Counted from the stretch's first letter, positions 3,233 through 64,000 are shown. The stretch is DNA of 64,000 bases from Macrostomum lignano (GCA_002269645.1 NIVC01000099.1:496001-560000), one strand, 5' to 3'. Made by a program: numbers and translations. Notes: generated by a model from the sequence alone, not told the origin.

Positions 3233-3419
3233 GGCGTTGGCTGGCTAATTGCCATCTGCACGATTTCTGCATTGAAACCCTTGTGACTGATTGGAGAATT
3301 GAAAACATTACAGCTTCAGTTTAATTTTCCCGCAATCTTGATTTGGTACCGCCCATGTCGTGTCCTGGAACTGAGTTTTGCTTCCATAATCCGACTGCAA
3401 TTTCTGGAATCTAAGTGCA

Positions 3420-3932
3420 ATTTCCAAGAAATTGGTAGCCGGTGTCAGATTCTGAATGTCATTTCCAAGAAATTGGTTGCCGGTGTCAGATTCTGAATGA
3501 CATTTCCAAGAAATTGGTTGCCGGTGTCAGATTCTGAATGTCATTTCCAAGAAATTGGTTGCCGGTGTCAGATTCTGAATGACATTTCCAAGAAATTGGT
3601 TGCCGGTGTCAGATTCTGAATGACATTTCCAAGAAATTGGTTGCCGGTGTCAGATTCTGAATGACATTTCCAAGAAATTGGTTGCCGGTGTCAGATTCTG
3701 AATGACATTTCCAAGAAATTGGTTGCCGGTGTCAGATTCTGAATGCCATTTCCAAGAAATTGGTAGCCGGTGTCAGATTCTGAATGCCATTTCCAAGAAA
3801 TTGGTAGCCGGTGTCAGATTCTGAATGACATTTCCAAGAAATTGGTAGCCGGTGTCAGATTCTGAATGCCATTTCCAAGAAATTGGTAGCCGGTGTCAGA
3901 TTCTGAATGCCATTTCCAAGAAATTGGTTGCC
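3420..3932. repeat. 41-bp minisatellite (ATTTCCAAGAAATTGGTTGCCGGTGTCAGATTCTGAATGAC), ~12.5 copies
   Basis: Period 41 (units start at 3421, 3462, ...). Confidence 0.97.
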
Positions 3933-20600: not shown

Positions 20601-23600
20601 AGGGGTCAGCTTGTCACACTGTCACCTTGATTTTTGCAGCTGCTCAAAGCCCCCTGCAGCAAATTGAACAAGCAAATTCACCCCAAACCAACCATGCCGC
20701 TGCCAGGTGGTACCTGGAGCTGCGGCGCATCTGGCATTCGCTCAGCTCCACCTGCCCGCACGAGATCAGCCGCTGCGTGCTGCTGTCGCTGCTGGAGAAG
20801 ACCCTCGGCTTTCTGCTTCAGCGATACGCGCAGGCGACGCCCTCGCACAGGCGGGTGAACCAGTACAGAGCTGACATCACCGCGATCCTCATGATGACGG
20901 AGGACCTGCTGTACGCCGTGTGCGAGCACGCTGAGCAGGTAAAGTGGCTTTTGGCAGGGTCAGTTACCGATCCGCACCCTCTAACCCGAGCCCACAATTG
21001 TACACCCGCCTGCCTACTTGAGAATCCTCCAGCCCACAATTGTACACCCGCCTGCCTACTCAGGAGTCCCCAGCCCACAATTGTACACCCGCCTGCCTAC
21101 TCAGGAATCCCCAGCCCACAATTGTACAGTCGCACGATCGAGCAAAGTCATAACTGCAGTCAGAAAATGCTTCCAGGTCACGAACCCGGACCAGCTGGAG
21201 GACGCGAGCATCTGCTTTGTGCACAACTGCTGCAGCGGCTTGCTGGCCTGCTTGGCCGTCGTGTCCTCGCCGCTGGCGGACCTGCACCGCGCCTTCCGCA
21301 AAGGGCTCGGCGCCGCCGGCGGCAAGTCCTCCTCGTCGAAGTCATCGGATCGGCAGACGGCGGCAGGCGGCGAGTCCGTCAGCGGCTCGTGCACCTACTG
21401 GCTGAGCGTGGTCCGGCCTGAGATGTACTTGCCTGACGCTGTGACGTGAGTTGCTGACGATGCGAGCTTTTCTAAAACTACTCAAGCCTGAACTAAATTC
21501 AGGCAAGGCTGATAATAATAGCTCGTAATAATAATTGATTACACCTGCCCCAATTGGGCCAGATGTGCAACCGACAGCTCAGCCGCAGCTATTGCGCGGC
21601 GCATCTGAAGGCTGCGTACGGCTGTTCAGTCAAAGGACTGGGGAGGGGGGGGTCGCCACACCCAGCCTAAATTACCCCAGCTAATGCTGCCACCCATTTT
21701 ACAGCTGGGTGAACTAAGGCAATGCAGAGTTAGGTGTCTTGCTCAAGGACACAAATTGTTCCGAGTAGGTCGAAAATCGAACCCCCGACCTTCCAGTCCA
21801 ACCCTTTAACCACTAGGCTAAAATCCCTATCTACGCTGCAAAACCTATAGAAAGCTGAGAAGAGTGCTCAAAGTGCTACTCTGGCTTCAACTCGCACTAA
21901 AGACACTTGTCGAATTCGAACTTCCAGCCTGGACGCCATGCCCTGCCAGGTGGCTCTGCTCATGCAGCTCCGGCTGCTGCAGGAGTCTCCAGCCGCCAGG
22001 CACGAGCACGTGCTCGCCGCCCTGCTCATGAAGCAGTTCGCCCTGTCCGTGCAGCTCGTCTCCCGCGCCTGCCTCTCCGCAAGTGGCAGCGACTCCGGCT
22101 GCGAGGCCACGCTGGCCTGCCTGCTGACCGTGCTGTCGCACTGCCGCGGCGCCCAGCTCGAGGGCCCGCTGCGCTGCCTGCTGCCCGTGCTGGACCGCGG
22201 CGGCGGTGGCGGCGGCGGCGGTCCCGACGATGAAGGCCAATGGGAGCATCTGGACAGGCGCCGGTTTCTCGGCTTGGCGAAGGCATCCGACGCGCCGCTG
22301 TGGCTGCGCGCGCTGGGCCGCCTGCTGGAGCCGCACCTGGAGACGGCGCTTCGGGCTGCCGTGAGCGAGGCGGCGCAGAGGAAGGCAGCGGAGCTGCAGG
22401 TGAGGGACACCAGTAAACTGGTGAACTGGTACTAAATTTACAGCTGTTTTAGCATTTTACTGCTAATCAGAGAAGTTTATTGACTTTGGGGCTGTTGGTT
22501 TTAATTGACTTTGGGGGGCTGTTGGTTTTATTGACTTCGGGGGCTGTTGGTTTTATTGACTTCGGGGGCTGTTGGTTTTATTGACTTCGGGGGCTGTTGG
22601 TTTTATTGACTTCGGGGGCTGTTGGTTTTATTGACTTCGGGGGCTGTTGGTTTTATTGACTTCGGGGGCTGTTGGTTTTATTGACTTCGGGGGCTGTTGG
22701 TTTTATTGACTTCGGGGGCTGTTGGTTTTATTGACTTCGGGGGCTGTTGGTTTTATTGACTTCGGGGGCTGTTGGTTTTATTGGCTTTGTGGGCTGTTGG
22801 TTTTATCGACTTAAGGTTTTGTTTTTATTACAACTTTTAATGCTTATTCTTGTACAAGCATTACAGGCATTACGTAACCTGATCCTGTTACGCATTTGTC
22901 TCCATGCTAACAACCACAGGTGCCAAGTCGGTCTGTCTGTCCCGCACTGCACGGCCCGCTGCCCTGCGGCTGCGCCGCCCCTGTCCCTGCCAGCCGCAGC
23001 AGTGCAGCGGCCGCTGGTTCCTCCGCGGCCGCCGCCGCCGACTCCCTGCTGGTGGCGCTGGCCGCCGAGTGGCCGCGCACCCCGCCAGCCGTGCAGTTCT
23101 GCCTGCGCGCCCTTGGCGACACCGCTGCACGCCGCGGCGCCCGACCAATCGGAGACTGCGCCGGCCTGCACATCCTGGGCGCCTGCATGGCGCAGCACCT
23201 GCGCCGCCTGCGGCTCAAAGACAGCGCCAGCGATCTTGGCCTGGGCGCCGATCCGGACGCCGTGCTGCAGCGGCTGGTCGAGGCGCTCACGGACGAGGTG
23301 CGTCGGCCAGCGTCTGTGCTGCGCATTGTGGAGGCCGTGAGTTCGCAGGTGAGCTGTCGCTGCTCATGGCAACAAAATATGGCTGAAAATTCGAACTATG
23401 AATTATGAATTTTTATGGAACACAAGTTAAGCACAACCGGCCGAGGTTAGTATGCAAATTTGCGTTGGGCAGTTGACGCAAGTTGAAAATTCAGCTGAGC
23501 TGCCAGCTTGCTAATTACGATTCAGCGCCCTGCAATATCATCAATGCCGCTCTTCGCCTCCTCTTTCTTCGCCTTCCACAGTCGGCCTCCAGCATGCTGG

Positions 23601-24328
23601 CTCCTTTCATTGACACGGTCAGCCCCGGCCCGCCGTCCGCACCGTCTGGCTGCAGCGGTGGCCAGTCCGGAGTCTCGGCCGCCTGGCAGGACCGGCGGCA
23701 GCTGGCCGCCATGCTGGCCGAGGTGGACGCGGCCGGCCACCTGCCTCACCTGGTCGGGCTCGGCCACCTGCTGCGCCGCAATGCGGAATGCCTGGCCGCC
23801 GGGCTCGGCGTGGCTGCCGCCGACGACGACGAAGTGGCAGCGGCGGCCGCCTCGGCCGGCTTCGTGTGCGACCTCGGCCCCATGGAGGCGGCGCCCTTCG
23901 ACCCGCTGCGCGCCGCCCAGCGCATGGGCAGCGACCAGCGCCGTCGCTACTTCGACGCGGACGCCGACGGCGACGCAGCCGAGGCGGCGGACCTTCGGGA
24001 CGACGAGGACGACGAAGAGGAAGACGGCAGTCCGGGCGACACCACCGAAGAGGACAGCGGAGGTCGGCGGCGACGCCGACGATCTTCGTCGAATCGAGGA
24101 AGTCGGCGAAAGAGGAGCCGCCAACGGCAGCAGAGGCGACGCGGCAGGCGGCCGAGGTTCAACTGGCCGGAGCTGCTGGCGGACGGCGGGGCGCGGCTCG
24201 GCCTCAGCCTGGTGAACTTCCGGTCTCTGCTGGGCCACCGCTGGGAGTTCACGCGGCCGGAGCTGCTGGAGGGCGACGCCGGCGCGCAGTCGATTGTGGA
24301 GGCGCTGGCGGCGAAGTTCGGCCTATGA
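17621..24328 (+). CDS. KIAA0825: KIAA0825 / DUF4495-family protein, ~1,400 aa; exons 17621-17688, 17767-17980, 18454-18786, 18869-~19271, ~19382-19668, 19799-20535, 20707-20938, 21177-21445, 21928-22399, 22920-23348, 23582-24328
   Basis: Phase-consistent GT-AG exons; the exon 4/5 junction is uncertain. Recognised from memory of the human protein: STVSLNSVEDS..LWNSL, DAGSNYWEDGQEFHDETRVSFSVERW, LLEKTLGFLLQRYAQATPSHRRVNQYRADITAILMMTEDLLYAVC, HNCCSGLLACLAVVSSPLADLHRAF, FNWPELL...FRSLLGHRWE. Confidence 0.8.
19251..19348. repeat. 41-bp tandem duplication (~2.4 copies) spanning an exon-intron junction of KIAA0825
   Basis: CCCTGCTGCAGGTGTGTGCGGGTGAATGTGTGCAGAGGTGA repeats at 19251 and 19292, with a partial copy at ~19333. 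Confidence 0.9.
20989..21128. repeat. 41-42-bp intronic minisatellite (CCCACAATTGTACACCCGCCTGCCTAC...), ~3.3 copies
   Basis: Units at 20991, 21033, 21074, 21115. Confidence 0.9.
21514..21821 (-). mobile_element. tRNA-derived CORE-type SINE (family B), copy 1, in a KIAA0825 intron
   Basis: Minus strand: TAGCCTAGTGG (A box), GGTTCGATT (B box), then TGTGTCCTTGAGCAAGACACCTAACTCTGCATTGCCTTAGTTCACCCAGCTGTAAATGGG, which resembles the MIR CORE domain. Ends in an (ATT)n-like tail. Second copy at 24961-25281. Confidence 0.75.
22478..22812. repeat. 25-bp intronic minisatellite (TTATTGACTTCGGGGGCTGTTGGTT), ~13 copies
   Basis: Period 25. Confidence 0.96.
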
Positions 24329-24960
24329 GCTCAGCTGGTGGATCGAGCACGGGACTGCACTGCGTTTGAGACTGTTTGAGTGATAACATGGACAAAGGCC
24401 TAGCCAATCACGGAGATGATAGAATAGAATGGATTGCTAGTCTAGTTAATCACCGAGATGATTGGAGTAGAATGGATTGCTAATCTAGCCATCAACGGAG
24501 ATGATGGAATAATCGTAGAATGGATTGCTAATCTAGCCTACTTGCTTTTAGCCATAGATTATTAACACATTCAATTACCTAGAACCAGTGCTCACAGGCA
24601 GTTTACATAGCAGAATGCACAAGACATTCTTAGGTTAACATTTTACATGCAGCACAATATTTTCTTAATCAGTGACGAGTCCCCAAGTAATTAGCAGCGT
24701 TTAACAGTAGTTTAGTTAAGTAATAATTATCTGGAATCACTTTTGTTCCACATATTTTATTTTTCTGTTGTTATTGTGATATCAGATTCAACAGTTTATA
24801 GCTTTGAAATGATATTTTTATCTCTATGTTGTATTTCTGTGTTAAAATCTTTTGTAGATTAAATAAACGCGTGAATCAGTGTACAATTTTATCTTAACTT
24901 TAAAATGCTGGTCAATAACCACTGAGTTCCTAATATCAGAATATAAATATGAACTTCAAT

Positions 24961-26276: not shown

Positions 26277-27078
26277 AACAATGTGCGCACCGTCTCCTAG
26301 GCAACCCCCTATCTCAGTGTGCACCCGCTCCTGACTAACCCCCCTATCCCAGTGCACCCGCTCCTGACCACCCCCGCCGCCTATCTCAGTGTGCACCCGC
26401 TCCTGACCACCCCCGCCGCCTATCTCAGTTTGCACCCGCTCCTGATCAACCCCTTCATCCCAGTGTGCACCCGCTCCGACCAACCCCTTCATCCCAGTGT
26501 GCACCCGCTCCTGACCAACCCCTTCATCTCAGTGTGCACCCGCTCCTGACCAATCCCTTCATCCCAGTGTGCACCCGCTCCTGACCAACCCCTTCATCCC
26601 AGTGTGCACCCGCTCCTGACCAACCCCTTCATCCCAGTGTGCACCCGCTCCTGACAAATCCCTTCATCCCAGTGTGCACCCGCTCCTGACCAACCCCTTC
26701 ATCCCAGTGTGCACCCGCTCCTGACCAACCCCTTCATCCCAGTGTGCACCCGCTCCTGACCAACCCCTTCATCCCAGTGTGCACCCGCTCCTGACCAACC
26801 CCTTCATCCCAGTGTGCACCCGCTCCTGACCAACCCCTTCATCCCAGTGTGCACCCGCTCCTGACCAACCCCTTCATCCCAGTGTGCACCCGCTCCTGAC
26901 CAACCCCTTCATCCCAGTGTGCACCCGCTCCTGACCAACCCCTTCATCCCAGTGTGCACCCGCTCCTGACAAATCCCTTCATCCCAGTGTGCACCCGCTC
27001 CTGACAAATCCCTTCATCCCAGTGTGCACCCGCTCCTGACAAATCCCTTCATCCCAGTGTGCACCCGCTCCTGACCAC
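26277..27078. repeat. 35-bp minisatellite (CTGACCAACCCCTTCATCCCAGTGTGCACCCGCTC), ~22 copies
   Basis: Period 35, with degenerate units at the left end. Confidence 0.97.
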
Positions 27079-27606
27079 CGCCTATTTTATTACCTCGACA
27101 AAACTGGTTGGAAAACAAGATTAAAATGACCAATAGAAACACATGTAAAAGTTGCCTAACAATCAAAACAAATCAAAACTTACACAACAGACGACATATG
27201 CGGCTAAAAATTCTGGTTAAATCTGCTTATAAAAAGAATATAATAAAAAGGAATATTTAATTTTTGTAAAAAGTTGAGTAAAAACTTCGTTGTAATCTAA
27301 TGACACAAGGTCTCTACATTTTAATCAGAAAATTCCTATGTACACGGAACCGAATACAAAAGTACAAATATAAGAATAATGGGAACATTTCCGAGCAAGT
27401 ATTGCGCTTTCTGAGTATTGCTTCTAGTTCGGTGCGAAAGGCCTCAAGTCCTCCGAATTCTTCAGTATTCGACAGGCACAACTGCTTGGAGAGTCACGTG
27501 GCATTTGTTGCCAAGGCTGATAAATGAGTCGCCAGTATGGAATCCGACAGTTGCTAAGTAAATGGATGGTTGATAAGGTAATAGCGGGGTTTCTAAGGCG
27601 ACATTG

Positions 27607-27800
27607 AGGTTGCTAAGGTCATCCTGTTGTTTCAAAGAAGACAATGTGGTTACTAAGGTCATGTTGGTTGCTAAGGGGATAATAGTTGCTAAGGAGAGGG
27701 TTGTTGCTAAGGGGATGTGGTTACCAAGGTTATGGTGGTTGCTAATGAAACAGTGGTTGCTAAGGGGATGGCGGTTGCTAAGGAGACGGTGGTTGCTAAG
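27607..27800. repeat. Degenerate short-period repeat with GGTTGCTAAG core
   Basis: About 9 loose copies of (G/T)TTGCTAAGG. Confidence 0.7.
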
Positions 27801-27952
27801 CAGAATAAAACAGCCACAGTAGGGATGCAGGTGCCCGCATCAATAAAATCATTACTACCCCTACGTGACCAAGCCGACCCATCCGCCTACTGAAGAATTC
27901 ACACCTGACCTCTCCGACACCAAACCAGTTCAATGTAAAGCGAGTCCAGAGC

Positions 27953-37192
<9,240 letters not shown>

Positions 37193-41804: not shown

Positions 41805-44800
41805 TTACGAGTTGGGCAGCAACCGGTCAATCTTCTGGAAGATTTCCACCACCTCCTCGTACCTGGTCACGTAAGACTCTCTCATTCTCTTGTGCGCGTG
41901 CTGCAGCTGCTCCAGGTTGTTGCTGAACCTCGCGAACAGGTAGTACTCAAGGAAGTCGGCGCTCTGGTCCTCCTTCAGCTCGCTGAACCAGTCGTCGTTG
42001 CTCTGCAGGTCCGGCAGCAGCACCGCTCGCAGGCACTTCAGCAGACAGTCGAAGTTCATGTAGAAGGCCGCCTCGTTCGGAGCCACCTTTGCAGGGAAAT
42101 ACTCGGCCAGGTTGAGAGTGTCGCCCTGGTCTCTCTTGAGTTTATTCAGGAACTTCAGCTCCGGTCGCTTGTCACTGTGGAAGCAGTGTTTCCAGGAATA
42201 GTCGTTGGTGTAGATTTCGACCTTGATATGTTTTCGAACTTTCTCCGCATCATGCTCACTGAACAGCTCAGAGGTGAGCGGAAGCCGGCGTCTTACTCTG
42301 TGCTGAGCAGAATTTCTCAAAATCTCTTTTGCTCCATCCATTTCCTTTCTGCTCAGTCTGTACAGAACTTTCAAGCCTTCGCGAACTGAGTACGCATGGT
42401 CTGGCATCTTGGAGATAATGTCTTCTATTTTGTTTGACTTCGGACCCTGAGCAAGATCGGTCAGTGAGTTTTCCATGAGTCGTTGAATGTCTGCGTAGCC
42501 GTGAAGTGGATGACTTACTCTGACAGGATTGAAGTAGGGCAGGAGAGTAAACGGGTGGTAGTAGAATGGATCAACACATTCACCGAGGCTGTTTACTTTG
42601 CCGATCCCCGATACCTTTTTCAAATAGTCCCTCACATGTCTGGATAAATCATTGATGACAGATTCAAGGCGCTCCACTAATCTTTTCTTGTCTGAATGTT
42701 CGCCTTTTAAATAGAGTTCAGCATCCTTCAGAAAGAAATGGGACATGCACGCCAGCTCGATTTTTCTGGGCTTCTTCATCTCGGTGAGCAAGAATTGAAG
42801 AGATTCTTTTAGCAGCTCAAATAAGTTGGCTCCTGTCCAGCGGTCACGGGGGGTGTTGCTGATCATGAAGAATAAGACGGTCTTTGCGTGATACGATTTT
42901 AAACCGGGTGCGTTCTCTGACACAACTTCTCTCAGCAGGTACTTGACCAGAATGAACAGCTGACCCTGAACCGGCAACAGGCGCTTCATAATCTCCTTCT
43001 CTACAAAGCTGGTACTCACTCGCATCTCATTTCTTTGCTTCCCAGTGGCCTCGTTTTTTCGGTGGTTTCTGATCAGATGCAGGATGAATTTCAGTAATTT
43101 CTTGTTTTCCAGCGCTTTAATTGCATCAACGGTAGCCGTCGGAAAATTGCTTTGACCATCCAACATTTTCTTGACATCCTCGGACGCCACCGCTGCTAGA
43201 GAGCAACAGCGGAAGGCCATGACTTCGTCAGTGGCTGGTCTGAGCTCTGATTCCATTGTCGTCTCTGCTGGTTTTGATTCTAAAAGCACAAATTGTTCAT
43301 CGCCCAATGTTTAATCTAACTTAAAAAGTGAGGCACAATATACGAGTAGCTATTTAATGTATGCGAATTGCTTCTTAAAGTAAACAAACCGTTCACTCAA
43401 GCTTTGACTCACCATAACTTGGGAAACTGACGTGTCCTTCTTCATATTCATGCTGTTTAACTCCATCACAGCCACATCCAGAAACGTGAATGATTTCAGC
43501 CTTCTCCAAATGAGTAAAATCGATGTCAGATTTGGTCAGCAATCCGTTGATGCAGTAGAGGTTTTGTCCCCAGCCGTCGCCGTAGCTTCCCATGATATAA
43601 ATCTCATCGTTCAGCTCTGCAATGAGCTCGCGATGTTGTTCGGCCAGACACCGCTGGAAGATCGCCCTGGGAAAGCCGATTCCCGACTTAAGCAGCGTCT
43701 TGTCCAGCTGGTCGCTGCTCAAATCGACTGGACTTGATTGCTCGATTGTGTCACCTGGAGCTTCCAAACTAAAACAGGTCCGTGCATTCTTTCAACTGTA
43801 AATTGACACTAATATGAAGAAAAACTGATAACTAACTCACCTGCTCTCTTCAGATGTGGAGGGTTGCAGAATTTTCGTTAATTTTTTGCTAACCGACAGC
43901 CATTTGTGCTTCTCCGACAACCTCAATGCTTCCTCGATTTGTCGGTATTCCCATTGGTTGCACAACCGGGATGCTTTAAGAGCTCCAACTGTGTCGGGAC
44001 GATCGAATATAACGGCCAGCTGTAGAACGTCATATTGGTTTGAGTTATTCGCTTTCAAAGATTGCTGAGCAGCTCTAGACGAACTAAGCAGCTGGTCCAA
44101 AACATTGTGCCTCGAAATAGCTGCATGCATGACGGCATTGTTACCATTATGATCTTGAATGCTTAAATCTGCTTTTATCCTGAGTAGCTCCTCAACGCAA
44201 TCAAAATGGCCGTATCGTATTGCCAGCATCAGTGCGGTCATTCCATCACTGTTTTTCAAATCGATACAGCCCGTCCCTGATTCACCACAAGTAACGCTTT
44301 TCTCACCAATCAGTCTAACAACACTAGCATGACCATTCTGGGCGGCAATCATGAGGGGCGTCATTCCGTGCTCGTCCTGCTGATCCAGATCAGCCTTGTT
44401 CTCAATTAGAAGAGTCACTGATTTATCGAAGCCCGACTTTGCAGCGGTGTACAGTGCGGACTGCTTCTCTAAATTGACGTCATTCACATTCGCCCCAGCG
44501 TTCAGAAGTTGCTCTGTAAGCTCAAAGTTTCCTTTTTCACATGAATTGATCAATAGTGTATTGTTATTCCTGTCTCTTTCATTTGCCTGCTCCTTTGATT
44601 GGATCAATGCTTTAGCAGAATTTTTATCTGTGAGAGAAAATATCAATGGCAACATTGAAGAAGATGGCGTTGCTCCAGCTTGGTCCAGCGAGCTATAGAC
44701 CTCTGATGAGGGGTAAGCTAAACTCAAAGCAGACTGGTTATCATTGTTTACTTTGTTGAGATCAGCACCGGCACGAATGAGCTGTTTTACAATTTCTGAT

Positions 44801-47800
44801 CGCTTATTGAAAGAGGCGGCCATAATGGGAGTGCAGCCATTTTTTCCTGGTAGGTCAATGTCTGCTGCAGATTTCAGTAGGCAGTTCGTGACAACTTCAA
44901 AACCTTCTTGACAAGCAATATGCAAAGCCGCTCCTCCGTCAGATCTCTGTGAGTCAATCGCTGCTCCAGCACGAATGAGGTATTCAACCATTCGCAAATT
45001 GCACCCAAAGCAGCTACAGATAAGAGCCGTGTCTCCTTCCTTAGTTACAGCGCTTATGTCTGCTCCGCACTGAATGAGGAACATTGCAAGCTTATTGTGC
45101 CCATTGGACACTGCTCTGTGCAGTGCAGTTGATCCACCTTTTCCTGATCTATCGATATTTTCTCCGATTCTTAGAATCATTTGAACAATTTGATCTTTTC
45201 CTGACTGCGCAGCCAAATGCAAAACAGTGTCGGATTCTGCATCCTGAATGGTGAAATCTGCACCGTGGTTGATCAGGAGCTCAAATATTTCCAGTCGTCC
45301 ACTGAACGCTGCGATGTGGAGAGCAGTTGTCAAATTGTTGTCTTTTCTATCCAAATCGATATTTTTTCTGAGCAACTCTCGCACGATAGAAATGTTTTCA
45401 GACACGACTGCGAGGTGCAGGGCGCTGGACCCGTCCTTTGTAACGGCGCCTAAATGAGCGCCCGCTGCTAGCAAAGTCTGAACTGTCAAAAGATTGCCAT
45501 TGAGACATGCGAGTAGCAGGGGTGTCGTGTCGTTCTTCCCCAAGATTTCCAATTTCGCACCAGCAGAAATAAGCAATCGGGCTATATCTGTGTGCCCCCA
45601 CTGAGCAGCCAAGTGCAAGGCAGTGGCTCCATGACCTTCTCTGTCATTGACGTTGGCACCAGATTCAATCAGTCTTTTGACGATCTTCAAGCAACCAAAG
45701 TAGGTTGAAAGGATTAAAGCAGTATCTCCATCACTATCCTTCTTGTTTAGATCAGCTCTAGCATTAATGAGTAGATCTACTATGCTTTCGTGGTTATTCA
45801 TGACTGCAAGAATGAGTGGTGTCGCCTGACCTTTGCCTTGAGCATCGATGTCACTATGTGACCGCAGTAACATTTTCGCGATTTCAAAATGACCATTTTG
45901 AGCGGCCATGTGAAGCGCAGTGCTGCCATTCATGTCTCGAATGTTCGGATCTGCGCCGAGTTCAAGAAGGCATTTAGCAGCCTTTTCCTTGCCAAAGTAA
46001 GCTGCGATTGTGAGTGCGGTGTCGCCATCGCTGTCCTGCTTGTCGATCGAGGCATTTGCACCCACCAGGAGCTGAATAACTTCAGCGTTATCATTTAGTG
46101 CTGCAGCAATCAATGCGGTCTGTCCTTCTGCAGCCTCAGAATCAACGGTAGCTTTTTTGCTAAGGAGAAGCCACACAACAAGTTGATGACCATTTTGGGA
46201 GGCCAGAATCAGTGGCGTAGCCTGACCTTTTCCTTTGCTGTCAATATCACCCCCAGCATCCAATAGCATTTGAACGATTTCGTAGTGACCACTTTGAGCT
46301 GCCATGTGAAGAGCTGTGCTGCCGTACTCATCTCGAATGTTGACACTCGCACCCGCGTTAAGAAGCATCTCGATGACTCCTGTATTGTTGCTGAACGCAG
46401 CGGACATCAATGCCGTTCGTCCATCAAAAGCTCGAAGATCAGCATTCGCTTGCTTACTGAGCAATATTTTCACTACATCAGCGTGGCTATGCATTGCAGC
46501 CAGCATGAGTGCTGAGTATCCATCATTATTCACCGCGTCAATCAGGGCATTATTATTCAACAGTAGCTGAGCCACGTCTCCGCGTCCATTTAGAGAGGCC
46601 CGAATCAGAGGTGTTGTTCCATTCTTGCCAATGGCATTTACATTGGCCCCATGTTCGAGCAGAAATCTAGCAATTTCAAGATGCCCATTTTGAGCAGTGA
46701 CATGCAGAGCTGTGCACCCGTTTTGGTCTCCATGATTGACACCTGTTTCATCAGTAATGAGTAGCGAAACGATTACAAAGTGTCCGGAGTACGCAGCTCC
46801 TATAAGCGGAGTGTCACCTTCGAGGTTCGCCAGCATGCGATTCGCCCCATTTGAGATCAAGAGCGCAACAATGCTGTTGTAACCAAGCAGTGAGGCGTAG
46901 AACAAGGCCGTATTACCCATGAGATCCTGGTGATCCACTTGGGCTCCAGCCAGCAGAAGCTCACTCACTGACTCATGGTGCCCCATGCAGCTGGCAAGGA
47001 TGATCGGAGTCGCACCTCCTTTCCCGATGCAGTTTACGTCAGCGCCTTTGCTGATGAGCCACTTTATCATGTCTGTGTGGCCCGTCTGGACTGCGAGTAA
47101 AATCGGCGTTGCCCTCTCGTTGTCGGCGGCGTTCACATCTGCAGATTCACTGACTAGCAGCTCAGCGATGTCTATTCTATTGAGTAGGGATGCTAGCAGA
47201 ATGGGAGAATGGCCGTGCTTATTCTTTACATTCGGGTTCGCCCCCGCAGCCAGAAGTAGCCGAGCAATTTCGAGCGAGGAGACAAATACTGCGTAGAAGA
47301 AAGCTGTGTTGCCCTTATTGTCAGGTAAGTCAACTTTGGCGTTTACGGAAAGCAGCAGCTCTACGCAATCTTTATGCCTACAATATGTGGCAAGTAGCAA
47401 CGGTGAATCTCCGTCATCGTCAACAATGTTCACATCAGCTTGACGCTCAATCAGAAGTTGCACAACCTCGAAGTGCCCACGAGTTGCTGCCAGCGTTATA
47501 GCGGCTGCTCCGCCTTTACCTCTGGAGTTGATATCAGCGCCGGATTCTAAAAGCAGCTTCACAACTTCAACGTGACCATTTTGTGACGCACAGTGTAGTG
47601 GGTTGTGCTTTTCATTGGCGACAGCGTGAACATTGGCCTGGTGCCTCAGAAGCAAACGGACGGCTTCTACCTGACCATCGAATGCGCTGCAAATCAACGG
47701 CGTCTCTCCAGCGTCATTTGTTAAGTTGGGATCGGCATCGTTCTCCAGCAAGCACTCAATGACCTCAATATTACCGACAGCTACAGCCGCTAAGAGCACA

Positions 47801-50800
47801 GACTGGTTGCCTAATTTCTTACTCTGCTGATTGACGTTAGCACCCATCGAAACTAGCAGGTATGCAATATCCGGGAAATTCCTGAGTATAGCGAAATGCA
47901 AAGCACTCACCCCATTTTCATCTTGCAGGTCGATGTTTAAGGTCTTATCCACTAGCATTTCGACTGCTTCAAAGCAGCCGGAGTAGCAAGATAATGTTAA
48001 AGCAGAATCACTTTGAGAGTTCGTCAGATTCACATCTGCACCAGAATCTAAGAGCATTTTCACCAGGTTCGGGTGTCGGTTCAGACATGCCAGCATGAGC
48101 GGTGTAGATCCATTTTTCCCCTTTGAATTCACGTCTGCACCAGCTAGCACAAGTTGGCTCGCAATCTCAAGGCTGCCGACTTGAGCAGCACAATGCAATG
48201 GCTGAACTCCCTCTTTTGAGCAAATATGAACATTTGCACCCTTGTCAATCAGTAGTTTTACAGAGGCAACCTGATTTGCCATTGAAGCGTACTGCAGTGC
48301 GGTGTCCCCATCTGAATCTTGTAGGTTTAGCTTTGCCCCTGCTTCAGCCAGCATTTGAACAACGGTGATATTTTTAGTCGTACTGGCCGCCATCAATGCA
48401 GTTTTTCCTTCCGGGTCTTGGTGATTCACATCCGCTCCAGCACTGATGACTAGCTCAACGAGTTGAGAGACATCGTCGATGCTGCCTCTGGCACACACAG
48501 AAAACAGGCAGCTGAGTCCGTCAGCATTTCTAATATTAACATCCGCTCCGGACTGCACAAGTAGCTTCAAGATTTCAAGCCTGTTGCAAATGCATGCAAG
48601 CAAAGCAGCTGTACACTTGTTCTTTCCAGAGGTGTTCACATCGACCATCGCGGCAGCAAGCATTTCCACGATGGGAAGGCAGCCCTGTTGAGTAGCACAA
48701 TGAATTGCTCGACATCCTTCCTTATCTGGAATTTCCAAATCCGCTCCTGCGCCGATGAGCAGCTCAGCGCATTTCACTCTGCTGAAGTAGGAAGCGCAGT
48801 TCAGTGCCGTGTCCCCATCTTTGTCTTGTTGATTAACGTTTGCACCAAAATGAAGAAGAACTAAAACAATGTCATCGAAACCCTGAACTGATGCCAAAAT
48901 GAGAGGAGAATGCATATCTGAATCTAAAACGTTCACATCAGCAGAGTACATCAGTAGTAATTGGACAATGTCGGTGAATCCTGCCATTGCTGCGACAGTC
49001 AATGGGAACTGACCAAGTAATCCAGTTTGATCTGGATTCGTTCCATACGAAAGCAACTTCATTACTGTATCTGTATTGTGTTGTGAACAGGCAATAAACA
49101 GGGCGGACGACCCAAAACTATCGGAGTGGTTGACATCCACTCCTAACTTTAGGATAAGAGTCAATGTTTCGATTGAACCGCTGACTGCAGCTAAGATCAG
49201 AGCGGTATCGTCATTATTGTTGGCAGCTTCGTGGTCCGCACCTACTGTCAGTAAATTTTTGACTACTTCAGTTCGACCGCACAGAGCCGCGATTGTGAGC
49301 GGCGTGTTCCCATTCTTTCCTCGCAGTTCAATCTCTGCCCCAGAGAGCAGAAGCAAGACAACGATATCATTGTAGCCGTTTTGAGCGGCTACATGAAGCG
49401 CAGCCGATCCATCACTTAATCTGAGATTCGGATTCGCACCTGCAGAGAGAAGCAATGCAACTGTCATCAGGTTTCCAAAGTAGGCAGCTTGAATCAATGC
49501 ACTGTGGGCCTCTTCATGTCGGTAGTTTGCATTAGCACCAGCGAGGAGAAGTTCCGAAACGATTTCATGATGACCTTTAACACTGGCCAAAATGATCGGA
49601 GTCCTACCACTCATTCCAATGAAATTCACGTCGGCTTGAGCAGAAATTAGAACAGAAACAATATCTCTATGACCATTCTGAGCCGCAAATATAAGCGGAG
49701 TTGCTAAAGTGAAATCAACATAATTCGGGTCGGCATTGGCTTGAAGCAAGAGTTTAACAACAGTGAGGTGACCAAAACATGCGGCATGGGTGATGGCGGC
49801 TCGACCCATGCGATCGAATGCGTTTACGTTTACACCCTTCTCAATGAGCAGGCCAACGACTTCTTCATGACCATTTGCGGCTGCGACAATTAGTGGAGTG
49901 GCTGCTCCCTTGCCAATATGATCTGCGTCAGCTCCTGCCTCGATCAGCTGCTCAGAAATACTCAAATAACCATTCTGAGCAGCGCAAGACAACGCTGAGC
50001 CTCCTTCGTTATCCGATGGGCTCACCAACGCCTGAGCTTTCAGTAGTGCGACCACTATTTTCTCAAAGCCTAAGAAAGAAGCAATTATTAGTGGAGTATT
50101 TCCTCCGTCATCTCTTGTTTCAACATCGGCTTGCGATTTGAGCAGCAACTCAACAACATCCGAATGACCATTCTGGACAGCGAGTCGCAACGGAGTTCCT
50201 CCTCTCTTGCCCCTCCAGTCGACATCGGCTCCAGCATGCAGCAGGTCTCTGCAGAGCTTGACGTGTCCGATTTGAGCAGCCATTATGAGAGGCGTTGCGT
50301 TCTGATAGTCCGGCATATCGACATTGGCTCCGGCTTTGATCAGCACTGCTGCAGTGTCTCTGTACCCGCTCTGAGCTGCAAGTCGCAACGGAGTTCCATC
50401 GTTTCTGCCCTTCCAGTCCACTTTTGCACCTGCACACAGCAGGGCATCGCAAATCTGGGAGTAGCCGCTCTGAGCTGCGAAAATCAGCGGTGTCGCTCTT
50501 TGAAAGTCGGCTGCGTCCACCTCGGCTCCAGAGTGCAGGAGCAGCCGTGTGACCTCCAAGTGACCTTCAGCTGCTGCGAAATGAAGAGCAGTCTTTCCCT
50601 CAATATTCGTTTTGTTGATCTCTTCCGGCTCGCTGCTCACGATAAATTCCACCTCTTGCAGGTTTCCACTCCATGCAGCCTCCATCAGTTGAGTTCTCTG
50701 CATTCCTGAGAATAAGTTACTGAGCTGGGTTTGAAGCTCAGAAACCTTCTGCTTTGGCTCTTCAGCCTGAGGTCCGTACGGCCTGGTCTTGAACTTTGGA

Positions 50801-53800
50801 GCCCGCAGATTGGCGTAAGTCTGCAGACTGACCAGAATCGCGCTGCTTCTGGTCTCAGCCGCCACATCGAAAATCGAGTTTCCGCTGCTGTCAAAGACGT
50901 CGGCTTCTGCCCCGGCCTCGAGCAGCTGCTTCACCACAGCCTCTCGACCTGCTTGCACAGCGAGCCACAGAGCCGTTCTACCGAAGCCGTCCCGGTCTTC
51001 CAGCAGCTCCTTGGTATGCGCCAACTGGCTGACGATCTCCTCGTGTCCGAGCTGCGCGGCCATCATCAGCGGTGAGCAGCCGCCTTCGTTGGCGATCCTC
51101 GGGTCGGCACCGGCCCGCAGCAGCTGAGCGGCGATCTCGCGGTGTCCCTCTTGACAGGCGAGCAGCAGCGGGCTTGTTGAGTCGTTCTTCAGCAGATTCA
51201 CGTCTGCACTGGCTTCAATCAGGTGAGCAACAACATTTCCGTGCCCGTTCTGAGCGGCTGCACTCAGAGGCGACGTCCCAAACTCGTCCTGGACGTTGAT
51301 GCGAGCACCTCGATCCATCAGTAACTTGACGATTGCCTCGTGTCCATTTTGAGCAGCCATTATCAGCGGTGAAACAGGCTTTTCAGGAATCTCAAGATCT
51401 GATCGTTTGCTCATCATCAGAATGAGCAGTTCCTCTCGGCCGAGCTCGCATGCTGTGATGACCTGCCAGGTCAGATCTGCATCGCTTGGTGCGCACTGCA
51501 GCACCATCTGCATCAGCTCAGGCTCATCGTTTCTCAAAAAATTCTCCATCAGCTCGTCGAAGGTTTGTAAATCCAAGAAAGGCGAATCTGTCTTTTGAAG
51601 AATCAACCGAGCGACATTGACGTGACCTGCTCGGAGAGCCGCTAGTAGAGCCGTCTCTCCCTGATCGTTCCTAACGTCCAGTCGAGCTGAGAAGTCAAGG
51701 AGAGTGCGCGCAATGTTCACGTGATCGGCTCTTGCAGCGATCAGTAGTGGCGTGTCTCCCGCTGCGTCGGTATCGTCCGGAGCGAAGCCAGCCTGAAGCA
51801 GCTGCAAAACTCTGTCGGACTGTCCGACGCTGCTCGCGACGTGCAGCTCCGTTCGACCTTGGCTGTTGCGACGATTTGGCGTTTTATTTACCTCTGTAAT
51901 TTAATTGTGGGCTAATAGAAATAGACTGGAACTAATAACACTTTGGCAGAAATATCGACAAACAACAAATTTTAATAGTTGCAGATAATTTAATATGATT
52001 CAAATCAGGGATCGTGGCTCCAGAACCAGGAGTTTTAACCATGATCTGCATGCATTTAGCCTCATTAGAAATAATAAAATGGTTTGAATCTTCTTTACCA
52101 ACAGTATGTTTTGCTTATTTGAATTTGCGAAAATACATCATTACTAGGCACAGCTTTTTTACTCGTGACAGATGAAAATAGTTCTACACTCGTAAGAAAA
52201 ACTTTTTGTATTGATCAGGTAAGAAAAATAACAAAAACAATCGCAGACTGCCCAGTCTGATGAGAGATCGAAAGTGCATTCAACACACAGAATGCTTTTG
52301 TACTTGTGCTCGAGTACGTCTGAGCGCATGCTTATAAATGCATTTTAATTTTTCTACTTATAAATTAATTGTTAGTAGAAAGAAATTTTGTAATTGGGGG
52401 CTCTCGACTCAAAATGACTAAATTCTTACATTATTTTGGGAATCGTTGTTGTTACACTTATTTTGGCTCCACATGCTCTCATTTTGGCTCCACATGCACT
52501 CATTTTGGCTTCACATGCTCTCATTTTGGCTCCACATGCTCTCATTTTGGCTCCACATACACTCATTTTGGCTTCACATGCACTCATTTTGGCTTCACAT
52601 GCACTCATTTTGGCTTCACATGCACTCATTTTGGCTTCACATGCACTCATTTTGGCACCGCAGCCCGGCACTTACTTTTTATCGCCACAGGTGGGCAATA
52701 ATTTTGGCGCTATATTTTGACTCCCTGAAGCACAATTATTGATTTCTATAATGAGTCACATGATGGAGCGTGGGGGGACAAAGCATTGGCATGCCCCTCA
52801 TAGCTTTTACTGGGGGGAGCATGTCCCCCCAGTCCTCCCGGTGGCGACGCTTCTGCTTAATGGCACGCACCCTAAACGACACGCACCCTAAACGACCCGC
52901 ACACTAAACGACACGCACCCTAAACGACACGCACCCTAAACGACCCGCACCCTAAACGACACGCACCCTTAACGACACGCACCCTAAACGACACGCACCC
53001 TAAACGACACGCACCCTAAACGACACGCACCCTAAATGACACGCACCCTAAACGACACGCACCCTAAACGACACGCACCCTAAACGACACGCACCCTTAA
53101 TGACACGCACCCCTAACGACACGCACCCTTAACGACACACACCCCTAACGACACGAACCCTTAACGACACGCACCCTTAATGACACGCACCCTTAACGAC
53201 ACGCACCCTTAATGACACGCACGCCTAACGACACGCACCCTAAACGACACGCACCCTTAACGACACGCACCCCTAACGACACGCACCCTTAACGACACAC
53301 ACCCCTAACGACACGCACCCTTAACGACACACACCCCTAACGACACGAACCCTTAACGACACGCACCCTTAATGACACGCACCCTTAATGACACGCACCC
53401 CTAACGACACGCACCCTTAATGACACGCACCCTTAACGGTCGACACGCACCCTTAACGACACGCACCCTTAACGACACGCACCCCTAACGACACGCACCC
53501 CTAACGACACGCACCCTTAATGACACGCACCCTTAACGACACGCACCCTTAATGACACGCACCCTTAACGGTCGACACGCACCCTTAACGACACGCACCC
53601 TTAACGACACGCACCCCTAACGACACGCACCCTTAATGACACGCACCCCTAACGACACGCACCCATAACGACACGCACCCTTAACGACACGAACCCTTAA
53701 CGACACGCACCCTTAACGACACGAACCCTTAATGACACGCACGCCTAACGACACACACCCTTAATGACACGCACGCCTAACGACACGAACCCTTAACGAC

Positions 53801-56800
53801 ACGCACCCCTAACGACACGCACCCTTAACGACACACACCCCTAACGACACGCACCCCTAACGACACGCACCCTTAACGACACGCACCCCTAACGACACGC
53901 ACCCTTAATGACACGCACCCTTAACGACACGCACCCTAAACGACACGCACCCTTAATGACGCGCACCCTTAACGACACGCACCCTTAACGACACGCACCC
54001 TTAACGACACGCACCCTTAACGACACGCACCCTTAATGACACGCACGCCTAACGACACGCACCCTTAATGACACGCACCCTTAACGACACGCACCCTTAA
54101 TGACGCGCACCCTTAACGACACGCACCCTTAATGACACGCACCCTTAACGACACGCACCCTTAATGACACGCACGCCAAACGACACGCACCCTTAATGAC
54201 ACGCACCCTTAACGACACGCACCCTTAATGACGCGCACCCTTAACGACACGCACCCTTAATGACACGCACCCTTAACGACACGCACGCCTAACGACACGC
54301 ACCCTTAATGACACGCACCCTTAACGACACGCACCCTTAACGACACGCACCCTTAATGACGCGCACCCTTAACGACACGCACCCTTAATGACGCGCACCC
54401 TTAACGACACGCACCCTTAATGACACGCACCCTTAACGACACGCACCCTTAATGACACGCACGCCTAACGACACGCACCCTTAACGACACGCACCCTTAA
54501 TGACACGCACCCTTAACGACACGCACCCTTAATGACACGCACCCTTAACGACACGCACCCTTAATGACACGCACCCTTAACGACACGCACCCCAAACGAC
54601 AAGCCCTCTTAACGACACGCACCCTTAATGACACGCACCCTTAACGACACGCACCCCAAACGACAAGCCCTCTTAACGACACGCACCCTTAATGACACGC
54701 ACCCTTAACGACACGCACCCCAAACGACAAGCCCTCTTAACGACACACACCTAATATTTCTTCATGCAAGCAAAATTAAAATTACTCAAGTTAACTACTT
54801 TCAGTAGAAACAGTAGCATTTTAATTCTAAAAATGAATAGCCACGATAATGCTTTTTTTAGTAGCTGGCACATGATGACGTGCACCAATATTATTCAATG
54901 TACATAAAATCGCTTAAGACAGAAGGAAAGGTCTTATGAAGCTCTTTAGAACAGCGGCACTGCTCCTGAGCTCAGGCAAAATGGGACGCTTTCATAAGAC
55001 CTAAACTTCATCATATTGTCTAAAATTCACAACGTCTAAAACTGAATGTGAAAGAGTGTGCAGAGATTTTAGACGCAGTGAAATTCAAAATTTCATTAGG
55101 CATAAAATTTAGGCGATGTGAAGTCATGCGCTTCAAAGGCGTTGTGAAATTTAGGTCTTATATGAAGCGCCCCAGCAAAGTTTATCTCCTTCCCTGGACA
55201 ATGAACCGTCTATCTATACGGTCGTACAGCTGTTGAACGCAAACAATTGGCAAACTACACTTGATCGTCTCATACTCATTGTGATTGTGTATGGCCACTT
55301 TTCTCTCCGAAACGCCCAGACTGTGGTTGAATTAGTAAACACCTGTCTGTTATTTTCGAACTGTTTATGTCAGTAGAAAAAGTTAAATAATAGCAATAAT
55401 AAACTTTAGTTGCACTCATTTCTCACTGCGTGCGTACGGCCTTAGATAACAATTAGCGGCCTCTTCGTCTCTTTATAATCATCTCACATTCGAGCTTCGT
55501 AAAAACTGTCTGGCTGCTTCTGCGAGTCTGGCAGTCCAAGCCTCGAGCAGTAGCTACCGGCTAACTGTACATTAAAGCCGCAAAGTTCCACATTTATAAT
55601 TAGAATATGCGGCACATTGGCACTGTTTACTGCTGTGTGATGTTTAGGAACAAAAAATTGATGCATTTTTCTGGTTTGGAAATTATTAGCAGTCGTTTCT
55701 GCAGCCCTGAACTGCCGCAATGTTTGACCAGTGCCATCGCAGCTTATAGTTCAGCACAATGACCTTCATTTTTACCTTCTTCATTAAATTTATGTGATGG
55801 TAGTAGAGCACAATCAAAACAAAAAAATTGAAAAGGAAATTATTGTTGCTGAAAACATCAGCGCCCCCGGTGATTGAAACTATGAGGACTCAAATACCTC
55901 CAGATCCTCCATTGGATTGCAGCTTTGCTCCCAGATCCTCCATTGGATTGCAGCTATGCTCCCAGATCCTCCATTGGATTGCAGCTTTGCTCCCAGATCC
56001 TCCATTGGATTACAGCTATGCTCCCAGATCCTCCATTGGATTGCAGCTATGCTCCCAGATCCTCCATTGGATTGCAGCTATGCTCCCAGATCCTACATTG
56101 GATTGCAGCTTTGCTCCCAGATCCTACATTGGATTACAGCTTTGCTCCCAGATCCTCCATTGGATTACAGCTATGCTCCCAGATCCTCCATTGGATTGCA
56201 GCTATGCTCCCAGATCCTACATTGGATTACAGCTTTGCTCCCAGATCCTACATTGGATTGCAGCTTTGCTCCCAGATCCTACATTGGATTGCAGCTATGC
56301 TCCCAGATCCTCCATTGGATTGCAGCTTTGCTCCCAGATCCTACATTGGATTGCAGCTTTGCTCCCAGATCCTCCATTGGATTGCAGCTATGCTCCCAGA
56401 TCCTCCATTGGATTGCAGCTTTGCTCCCAGATCCTCCATTGGATTGCAGCTTTGCTCCCAGATCCTCCATTGGATTACAGCTATGCTCACAGATCCTCCA
56501 TTGGATTGCAGCTATACTCACAGATCCTACATTGGATTGCAGCTTTTCTCACAGATTTTGCTTTGGATTACAGCTATGCTCACAGATTTTGCTTTGGATT
56601 ACAGCTTTTCTCACAGATCCTACAGTGGATTACAGCTTTTCTCACAGATTTTGCTTTGGATTACAGCTATGCTCACAGATTTTGCTTTGGATTACAGCTT
56701 TTCTCACAGATCCTACATTGGATTGCAGCTATGCTCACAGATCCTACATTGGATTACAGCTATGCTCCCAGATCCTACATTGGATTGCAGCTATGCTCAC

Positions 56801-57756
56801 AGATCCTACATTGGATTGCAGCTATGCTCCCAGATCCTACATTGGATTACAGCTATGCTCCCAGATCCTACATTGGATTGCAGCTATGCTCACAGATCCT
56901 ACATTGGATTGCAGCTATGCTCCCAGATCCTACATTGGATTACAGCTATACTCACAGATCCTACATTGGATTGCAGCTATGCTCACAGATCCTACATTGG
57001 ATTACAGCTATGCTCACAGATCCTACATTGGATTGCAGCTATGCTCACAGATCCTACATTGGATTACAGCTATGCTCCCAGATCCTACATTGGATTACAG
57101 CTATGCTCCCAGATCCTACATTGGATTACAGCTATGCTCCCAGATCCTACATTGGATTGCAGCTATGCTCACAGATCCTACATTGGATTGCAGCTATGCT
57201 CACAGATCCTACATTGGATTGCAGCTATGCTCACAGATCCTACATTGGATTGCAGCTATGCTCCCAGATCCTACATTGGATTACAGCTATGCTCACAGAT
57301 CCTACATTGGATTACAGCTATGCTCCCAGATCCTACATTGGATTACAGCTATACTCACAGATCCTACATTGGATTGCAGCTATGCTCCCAGATCCTACAT
57401 TGGATTACAGCTATACTCACAGATCCTACATTGGATTGCAGCTATGCTCACAGATCCTACATTGGATTACAGCTATGCTCCCAGATCCTACATTGGATTA
57501 CAGCTATGCTCACAGATCCTACATTGGATTACAGCTATGCTCACAGATCCTACATTGGATTACAGCTGTGTTCACAGATCCTACAGTGGATTACATCTGT
57601 GCTCCCAGATCCTACGAGTACAGTGGATAGCGTTTTATATCCCATTCATATTCCATATTGCATAACTTATTATTAAAACCAGCTAGAAATCATACTGTCT
57701 GAGAACGAGAACTCACCAGACTCTTCAGCACTGTCATCGTCGACTCCAGCCTCCAT
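41805..57756 (-). CDS. Giant ankyrin-repeat protein fused to a C-terminal Mab-21/cGAS-like nucleotidyltransferase (cGLR), ~3,300 aa; exons 57756-57717 (probable start), 51893-43841, 43768-43413, 43279-41805
   Basis: An 8,053-nt exon of canonical ankyrin repeats (G.TPLHxAAxxGHxxxVxxLLxxGA). Phase-consistent GT-AG introns 43769-43840 and 43280-43412 join it to YIMGSYGDG...SDIDF, TDEVMAF, RVSTSFVEKEI, LKSYHAKTVLFF..PRDRW..NL and SHFF, the hallmark Mab-21/cGLR motifs. The first exon (MEAGVDDDSAEES, phase 1, GTGAGT donor) is less certain. Confidence 0.85.
52440..52655. repeat. 21-bp minisatellite (CATTTTGGCTTCACATGCACT), ~10 copies
   Basis: Period 21. Confidence 0.95.
52862..54752. repeat. 16-bp minisatellite (CGACACGCACCCTTAA and variants), >110 copies
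   Basis: Period 16 with a gradient of variants along the array. Confidence 0.97.
55897..57612. repeat. 31-bp minisatellite (CTCCCAGATCCTACATTGGATTACAGCTATG), ~55 copies
   Basis: Period 31. It explains three long + strand ORFs. Confidence 0.97.
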
Positions 57757-62705: not shown

Positions 62706-64000
62706 TTAACCCTCGAACGTTGGAGAAAACAATTGTCGGTTTATTATATTTGGGGTCCAATGGACCCCTCTGAGTTGATGCATGTTAACAATGCTTTATT
62801 GATTATTTATTGTTCAAAGCAAAAAACTACCAATACAATGGCGAACGTAATACATTAGTCGCATATTATCAAAAGCATAGCAACTTATTCATGTACTTTC
62901 TAAATGAAATTAAGCAATGAAGCTGAGAGTACTGATTAGTACTAAGTATGTACATGTAGCTGCATCTTCCTCTATAGGGAAACAGCTGTTCGTCTACAGT
63001 AACAGCTTCATTAGGAAAGTAACTCTTCTGTGAGTTCTGGACAAGTCCGTCAAGCAGCAACCTCACAGCGGCAAGCTTATCTAGCTCTTTGCAGTCGCAC
63101 ATTTCGAGTGTCGCGGTTGTCAAGTCGCAGAAATTGGCGAATTAGTCTTGAAGCGCGTCAAAGACATGAAGTTCTTGAAAACCTTTCTTCCGAATTCCTC
63201 ACTCCAGAGCTCATCGATGCTCTCCATGCTTCCTTTGAATACTCCGCGAAGAATGTTTAGGCCAATGAAGGCATTGATTTCCTCTCTGGTAGTTGGATTC
63301 CAAGCATTTCCAAGAACTCTCCTAGCTTCGCGGTTGGTCTCTATCACAATTGTGTCAACCATGTCATTGTCAAAGATGACGTGGAAAGCCGACTCTTCAT
63401 CATGAATGCGTGCTGCAGCGTAAGCTGTGATTCCAGGTCTATTGCGCAAGATGTTGCAGGCTGGCTTCTGTCCAGGACGTGAAGTTTCATGGTGCGCCCA
63501 TACTTGACCACTAGGACTGTGATAACCTCTTTCAACATCACCAGCAGCAGCTGCGGCAGCAACAGGTGATGCTGGCCTTGATGAATCACTAGATGCGTCT
63601 TCAACATCGGGCAAATCAATATCTTGTTCGGCTTCAGCAATATCCGAAAGAGCCTCGTCTTCGTCCGATACTTCAGCGTCAATATGGGCTTCTGGGTGAG
63701 CAACTGGTTGGTTCACAATAACTTTAAGAGCTCTAGACTTAGCAGCTCTTACGATCATCGGTCTAGAAGAAGCCATTTTGCAAATTTTCGCAAATACTTG
63801 CTGAGTAAATGCTTGGTATAGTAGTTTTCTCTATGAATCAGCTGGAAATCGTTCGTTGTAAAGTAGCTATTTTCACAAGATTAGGGCAAGGAGGGTGCTC
63901 CTTATATACCCATCAGCTATATATGGAATATTCTAGAAATATAAAATATTAGAAAGTTTAGAAAATATTGCACCGCCCCAACCGACCTTGTGTGTGTTTC
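62706..64000 (-). mobile_element. Internally deleted, frameshifted piggyBac (PGBD4-like) transposon; other end lies outside the window
   Basis: TTAA at 62706-62709 is followed by CCCTCG (piggyBac end) and the subterminal palindrome GGGGTCCAATGGACCCC. Transposase from ATG 63776: ...IVIETNREA...EEINAFIGL..LWS..MSLTRF, then frameshifts, then DKLAAVR...YFPNEAVTVDEQLFPYRGRC (first catalytic Asp). The rest of the DDD domain is missing. Confidence 0.88.

Follow-up and report, generated by a model that had tools for sequence, protein, structure and literature searches.

We analysed a 64-kb stretch of DNA from Macrostomum lignano (GCA_002269645.1 NIVC01000099.1:496001-560000), hereafter the window, in which all positions are counted from the first letter. 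Its minus strand carries a single long gene, to which every feature in Table 1 belongs and which is predicted to encode a solenoid of ~70 ankyrin (ANK) repeats, a divergent nucleotidyltransferase (NTase) domain of the Mab21/cGAS fold and a helical tail.

Structure of the ankyrin-NTase gene

The ankyrin reading frame runs without a stop through 2,684 codons (51891 to 43840) and is joined in frame to the NTase exons by two introns, both of which are bounded by GT and AG and could be read directly from the DNA. The donors of intron 1 and intron 2 both carry GTGAG and thus follow the M. lignano donor consensus GT[G/A]AG (PMC8629364). When 43841-51807, 43413-43768 and 41805-43279 are joined, the result is 3,265 codons with no internal stop; the predicted product has ~3,270 amino acids (aa), a mass of ~352 kDa and an isoelectric point (pI) of 5.4. 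An initial annotation of this DNA had described an ankyrin exon of ~2,680 aa spliced in frame, through introns of 72 and 133 nucleotides (nt), to a Mab-21-type domain, and this description holds. The start codon, however, does not lie inside the long exon, whose frame opens right after an acceptor.

The position and phase of intron 2 are the same in an annotated M. lignano paralog, P0002, where the residues around the junction correspond one for one (SY(G/AA)SKPAE in the window versus SV(G/TG)SQPAM in the paralog) and the alignment crosses the junction without a gap. The locus of this paralog (L001) has two introns, the first of which interrupts the linker between ANK repeats and NTase, shortly before the conserved N-terminal helix. 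Together with the same order of ANK repeats and domain in M. lignano paralogs, the conserved intron position and phase support the earlier prediction that the ankyrin exon and the NTase exons form one fused gene. About 30% of M. lignano genes are trans-spliced to a spliced leader (SL), and operons exist (PMC8629364). A stand-alone NTase gene is nevertheless unlikely, because in exon 43413-43768 no Met precedes the conserved N-terminal helix, the first in-frame one standing immediately ahead of the G-S motif, and because the ATG of the 35-nt SL, judged from the sequence and the published SL, would be out of frame at the acceptor of intron 1. Retention of intron 1 would end the ankyrin open reading frame (ORF) right after the donor, at a TGA at 43837-43839.

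Pfam recognises the array with E = 0, through 46 stretches of Ank_2 (1,774 bits) and 45 of Ank, while a self-built hidden Markov model (HMM) counts 70 repeats with a 33-aa period, close to the 70-80 first estimated from length. Numbered from 51807, the repeat blocks lie at residues 17-71, 146-304, 402-2351 and 2426-2550, and one further repeat lies within the 28 codons upstream of residue 1. Tandem Repeats Finder (TRF) detected no tandem array inside the ankyrin exon, though minisatellites abound elsewhere in the window, and self-BLASTN of the exon DNA returned two weak matches only (64-139 nt, 75-80% identity). As DNA self-similarity is negligible, the array is old and diverged. Both an assembly artefact and a recent tandem amplification of the exon were ruled out by these two analyses.

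At the 5' end, the acceptor TTACAG at 51894 matches the trans-splice motif [T/C]TNCAG. A start supplied by the SL at this site was rejected, as the SL ATG would there run ATG AGG TAA. The first acceptor (51892-51900, minus strand) is a tandem AG, TTACAGAG, cut at its end; an SL joined at this non-canonical acceptor, two bases past the canonical CAG, would place the SL ATG in frame and give M-V-N-K-T-P.... With low confidence, we propose the 16-nt mini-exon listed in Table 1 as the start of the gene. Its ATG is the sole nearby one with a fitting phase, its last G would form GAG with the AG at 51893-51892, and the product would begin MHADH-E-VNKTPNRR...; its donor, GTTAAA, is atypical of the M. 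lignano consensus.

Table 1. Coordinates of the ankyrin-NTase gene and its parts within the window
Feature	Position	Strand	Basis or detail
Candidate first mini-exon, ATGCATGCAGATCATG, 16 nt	52040..52055	-	Phase fit, low confidence
Giant ankyrin-repeat coding exon	43841..51893	-	Open frame; opens after acceptor TTACAG at 51894
Unbroken run of ~59 ankyrin repeats (residues 402-2351)	44755..50604	-	Self-built HMM; inter-repeat gaps of 0-23 residues
Intron 1, 72 nt, ankyrin array-NTase linker	43769..43840	-	GCAG/GTGAGT ... TTTTAG/, read directly; frame kept
NTase N-lobe exon (spine helix, strand 1, G46-S47, D67-I-D69, His/Cys cluster)	43413..43768	-	Alignment and AlphaFold2 model
G46-S47	43585-43590	-	Present in 23/23 (alignment)
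S-D-I-D	43519-43530	-	D67-I-D69 at 43519-43527
H80/C84/C86/H98 cluster	43432-43488	-	H-x3-C-x-C-x11-H, plus C130; N-lobe
Intron 2, 133 nt, phase 1	43280..43412	-	TATG/GTGAGT ... TTTTAG/, read directly
Last exon (D122, RVSTSFVEKEI, Mab-21_C lobe, C-terminal extension)	41805..43279	-	Motifs, Pfam, alignment
Third Asp, D122, in ATDEVMAF	43227-43229	-	Present in 22/23
Mab-21_C helical lobe	42666-42953	-	Pfam
Conserved helical C-terminal extension, last ~230-270 residues	about 41808-42509	-	Family alignment
Stop codon TAA	41805-41807	-	

Fold and active-site residues of the NTase domain

The domain downstream of the ankyrin exon has 595 aa. Its structure was modelled with AlphaFold2 from an alignment of 23 sequences, giving a predicted local distance difference test (pLDDT) score of 86.8 and a predicted template modelling (pTM) score of 0.87; this run replaced one based on five sequences that was unusable (pLDDT 57.6). 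The model runs from a spine helix to a strand at residues 42-45, G46-S47, a strand at 68-81 that opens with D67-x-D69, and a strand at 121-129 that holds D122, an order of secondary structure that fits an NTase core. When the model was compared with the PDB using Foldseek, the best match was human cGAS (5vdq; E 7.8e-6, 398 columns over both lobes, target-normalised template modelling (TM) score ~0.52), followed by MAB21L1 (1.8e-5), MB21D2 (5e-5), bacterial CdnE (0.025) and MiD51 (0.06), while viral structures (BFVD) yielded no match below E 0.19. At the sequence level, a family profile matched 'cGAS-like receptor 1' (8gjy, E 8e-8) and cGAS (4e-7) in the PDB over the C-terminal half only, and single-sequence phmmer against PDB sequences gave marginal cGAS matches (E 0.01) confined to the C-lobe. 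The model and its matches thus bear out the fold assigned by the initial annotation, and the domain is predicted with high confidence to adopt the Mab21/cGAS fold.

To gauge conservation we used the alignment of 23 family sequences, which are 24-32% identical to the window protein; for its full-length paralogs the range is 24-33%. Besides the motif residues counted in Table 1, D67 is present in 23 of the 23 sequences and D69 in 22, and R191, S193 and E198 of the RxSxSxxE motif are each invariant. Because these residues are invariant or nearly so in paralogs that are otherwise this divergent, their conservation argues for purifying selection on the predicted active site. The G-S, SDID and third Asp that had been read from the DNA are found at the positions then assigned to them, RVSTSFVEKEI and SYHAKT are both present, and the active-site set of G-S, D-x-D and D is, as had been proposed, intact. 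In the window protein the motif reads IMGS-X19-DIDF-X50-TDE, which fits the motif for cGAS-like receptors (cGLRs) given in the text of Li et al., h[QT]GS X8-20 [DE]h[DE]h X50-90 h[DE]h (Li et al. 2023, bioRxiv 10.1101/2023.02.22.529553, PMC9980059), except that M stands in place of Q/T; in this copy, unlike in the published h[DE]h, no hydrophobic residues flank the third Asp.

Assignment to the Mab-21 family by HMM succeeded for one lobe and failed for the other. The helical Mab-21_C model (PF20266) matches residues 229-324 of the 610-aa query above its cut-off (E 9e-8) and was found in all 23 family members, but the Mab-21 NTase model (PF03281) matches neither the window protein nor any of the 23. 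The N-lobe is therefore recognised through its motifs and fold only. Weak matches to an MTPAP-like poly(A) polymerase palm domain occur in four of the 23 members (best E 0.025), and hhalign pairs the PAxDxVxAxxCC strand of the family with a strand of a distant Mab21-like protein.

The vertebrate-type zinc thumb is absent from the domain, in agreement with the initial annotation. Between the D-x-D strand and the third-Asp strand lies a cluster of His and Cys residues that is well conserved (H80 in 21, C84 in 20, C86 in 23 and H98 in 21 of the 23 sequences) and that, with C130, may be a family-specific zinc site. The zinc thumb of vertebrate cGAS lies elsewhere in the fold and is distinct from this cluster. 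The C-terminal extension is likewise kept across the family, and its structural matches in Foldseek are weak and TPR-like. The NTase core has a pI of 7.3, versus a family median of 8.1, and in light of the trend described in the text of Li et al. this near-neutral value is a weak hint that the ligand may not be a nucleic acid. No second Mab21 copy was found in the window.

The domain thus shares with animal cGLRs (cGAS, Drosophila cGLR1, coral and oyster cGLRs, MB21D2) the bilobed Mab21 fold, the G-S / [DE]h[DE] / [DE] set and the Mab-21_C lobe. It differs from them in having no zinc thumb, no match to PF03281 and a short spacer between D-x-D and the third Asp, and in possessing the N-lobe His/Cys cluster, a core of near-neutral pI and a long C-terminal helical domain.

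Related proteins in Macrostomum and beyond

A search of 5.8 billion proteins with the C-terminal 610 aa identified four relatives, three M. lignano proteins and one JGI fragment. Two of the three M. lignano proteins have ANK repeats followed by the domain, Mab-21_C was found in two, and the match to P0001 reached E 1.5e-59 over 89% of the domain. The same 5.8-billion-protein set held no near-identical full-length protein or transcript-derived fragment, the sole close match being an M. lignano UniProt fragment of 114 aa (A0A1I8J5X5) that is 94% identical over the last 109 aa and has the same C-terminus. On this identity, the window would come from M. lignano, a hidden polyploid, as a homeolog or allele, or else from a sister species. 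A profile search of 1.84 billion representatives revealed a much larger family, in which 76 proteins fell below E 1e-30 and 274 below E 1e-10, and 17 of the 20 family proteins that were looked up are from M. lignano. The sole close homologs of the window protein are M. lignano proteins with ANK repeats and Mab-21_C. The window gene has the hallmarks of this family, namely the ANK repeats, the GS..GWG..SDID NTase, Mab-21_C, the C-terminal extension and a phase-1 intron after the N-lobe, and on these sequence features it belongs to a family of ANK-cGLR-like genes that has expanded greatly within the Macrostomum lineage.

Two M. lignano paralogs, P0049 (PAA93319.1, 2,111 aa) and P0032 (1,099 aa), have a caspase domain at the C-terminus (Peptidase_C14, E 3e-27 in PAA93319.1 and 3e-25 in P0032) and also a second block of ANK repeats. 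These predicted fusions link the family to cell-death or immune signalling. Directly upstream of P0002 lies a second ANK-Mab21-like gene, at 48-68% identity, on each of two contigs (L001 132-5094, NIVC01002079.1; L002 1790-4718, NIVC01000673.1), so in M. lignano part of the family is organised in tandem.

ANK-cGLR fusions are not new. In the text of Li et al., cGLRs are defined by three criteria and some are fused to ANK or TPR modules; rows 89-93 of their Table S3 list five M. lignano proteins of the window family that were cloned as NTase domains with the ANK repeats removed, and their Table S2 records Ank_2 in those proteins, as well as ANK repeats beyond residue 2,100 in cGLRs of other species (PMC9980059). 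To the extent of these tables, the family is already classed as predicted cGLRs and the window gene is an extreme new member of it, so its novelty was at first overstated. According to the same source, most platyhelminths have no cGLR except Mab21-like proteins, and the parasitic flatworms shown in Table S5 have zero cGLRs and zero STING, with Macrostomum not among the rows shown (PMC9980059). Literature searches combining Macrostomum with cGAS or STING returned nothing beyond Li et al. 2023, and no STING gene was found in the window.

The catalogued M. lignano proteins, among them PAA45980.1 (BOX15_Mlig022265), PAA86972.1, PAA57558.1, PAA93208.1 and PAA68676.1, resemble the window protein in their N-terminal ANK repeats, GS..GWG..SDID, PAxDxVxAxxCC, Mab-21_C, C-terminal extension and two-intron layout, but differ in size, having roughly 5-28 repeats and 900-1,575 aa versus ~70 repeats and ~3,270 aa. 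In the longest well-formed paralog found, of 1,575 aa, the domain begins at residue 956, and the ~70 repeats of the window protein amount to roughly 2.5 times its array; longer family entries (2,381 and 3,379 aa) come from visibly poor gene models. To compare the array with ANK proteins at large, we searched with a contiguous 1,952-aa portion of it, which gave 409 proteins at E<1e-100; lengths of 2,000-3,400 aa are frequent among them, as are fusions to NACHT, death, TIR, kinase or caspase domains. Giant ANK proteins of immunity and cell death in fungi and invertebrates, with NACHT, death, TIR or kinase domains, likewise couple arrays of 2,000-3,400 aa to a signalling module. They differ from the window protein, which has a Mab-21 domain, in that precomputed Pfam lists place no Mab-21 family member among the best 120 of the 409 matches. 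The size that the initial annotation called exceptional is therefore exceptional within the Macrostomum family only, ANK proteins of this length being frequent elsewhere.

Possible activity, alternatives and genomic surroundings

We consider it fairly probable that this one gene, with its ~70-repeat solenoid, divergent Mab21/cGAS-fold NTase and helical tail, encodes an enzyme whose synthesis of a second messenger is gated by a ligand. Such an enzyme would rest in an inactive state until a ligand binds, or the protein oligomerises, through the ankyrin solenoid, the C-terminal helical domain or both; the NTase would then be activated, and the resulting nucleotide second messenger would act on an immune or cell-death pathway. 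With characterised cGLRs as a guide, the repeat domains would serve in sensing, auto-inhibition or assembly; catalysis, the nature of its product, an activating ligand and a downstream receptor are likewise inferred. A more specific proposal, that the solenoid is the ligand-sensing or force- or assembly-sensing module of an active cGLR and that Macrostomum possesses a large repertoire of cGLRs that sense proteins rather than nucleic acids through variable, ectodomain-like ANK arrays, in part wired to caspases, within a phylum where cGLR signalling is otherwise reported as largely lost, appears doubtful to us. The initial annotation, which had inferred a competent synthase controlled by the array and perhaps sensing protein or damage, is supported in part, namely for the fusion, the fold and the active-site residues.

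Several observations weigh against ligand-gated synthesis. Similarity to cGAS and MAB21L1 reaches TM-scores of just ~0.5, and a match of this fold fails to tell active cGLRs from inactive MAB21L1; PF03281 is silent in all 23 family members; and the spacer of 50 residues between D-x-D and the third Asp is as short as the published motif permits. The text of Li et al. names no M. lignano protein when it describes the 15 active enzymes that were characterised, which does not imply inactivity (PMC9980059). In addition, the caspase-fused paralogs have lost acidic residues, P0032 and P0049 having DxN and no third Asp, and P0004 reads SNVN. Because of the losses in the caspase fusions, the Mab21-type fold can, it appears, also be used non-catalytically in the Macrostomum family.

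Several of these observations would suit a pseudo-enzyme or nucleotide-binding scaffold resembling MAB21L1 or MiD51, in which case the window protein would be a giant ankyrin adaptor that makes no second messenger. The model resembles MAB21L1/2 and MiD49/51, for which no cyclic-nucleotide synthesis is known, almost as closely as it resembles cGAS, and according to the text of Li et al. MAB21L1/2/3 have no active site predicted to be functional (PMC9980059). In contrast to MAB21L1/2 and MiD49/51, however, the window protein keeps the full acidic triad and G-S, and retention of G-S, D-x-D and the third Asp in 22-23 of 23 sequences at ~30% identity would be hard to explain without selection on metal and NTP chemistry. 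We regard a scaffold as unlikely.

Less plausible again is an active NTase of another chemistry, such as the synthesis of linear 2'-5' oligonucleotides as in OAS, RNA 3' tailing or protein nucleotidylation, in place of cyclic dinucleotide synthesis. GS-x3-G-x-G...SDIDF resembles a generic signature of Pol-beta, terminal uridylyltransferases (TUTases) and OAS, and the MTPAP-like palm matches and the divergent N-lobe with its family-specific His/Cys cluster point in the same direction, but the C-lobe is clearly Mab-21_C in all 23 members and the best structural and profile matches are to cGAS and cGLRs rather than to TUTases or OAS. A wrong gene model, in which the ankyrin ORF and the NTase exons are separate (for example in an operon resolved by SL trans-splicing) or form a pseudogene, is very improbable: although trans-splicing is common in M. 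lignano and retention of intron 1 would lead to a stop, the architecture is kept in many annotated paralogs, the intron position and phase are conserved, the second exon could hardly start on its own, and all 3,265 codons are open.

The gene bears on a wider question, how cGLRs are activated by anything besides nucleic acid, most animal cGLRs being orphan receptors. In this flatworm family the predicted enzyme always stands behind a variable ankyrin array, which makes it a natural place to ask whether solenoids sense, and the paralogs with a downstream caspase may connect it with cell death. RNA interference and transgenesis are available in M. lignano, which makes it a tractable model in the laboratory.

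Unusually dense minisatellites surround the gene (52455-57615, 26302-36257, 2778-3932, 7858-8916 and 14863-15347); their units of 15-117 nt occur in up to 118 copies, with matches of 88-99%. The array at 52856-54751, a 16-nt unit repeated 118 times, lies immediately upstream of the gene. Many spurious ORFs, in all frames, arise from these arrays. Two regions, 18000-24500 and 28000-32000, have 58-63% G+C versus 32-50% elsewhere, and contain overlapping ORFs on both strands and several minisatellites. A probable transposon fragment lies at 63120-63776 (minus strand), where an ORF resembles a piggyBac-type transposase in its N-terminal part (DDE_Tnp_1_7, E 1e-15, profile positions 4-83 of 349). 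Finally, the minus strand at 9370-11082 carries a 570-codon ORF that possibly encodes a single-exon LRR membrane protein: its N-terminus resembles a signal peptide, LRR_8 matches it weakly (E 1e-3), and it has a Ser/Thr-rich stalk and one transmembrane-like segment.

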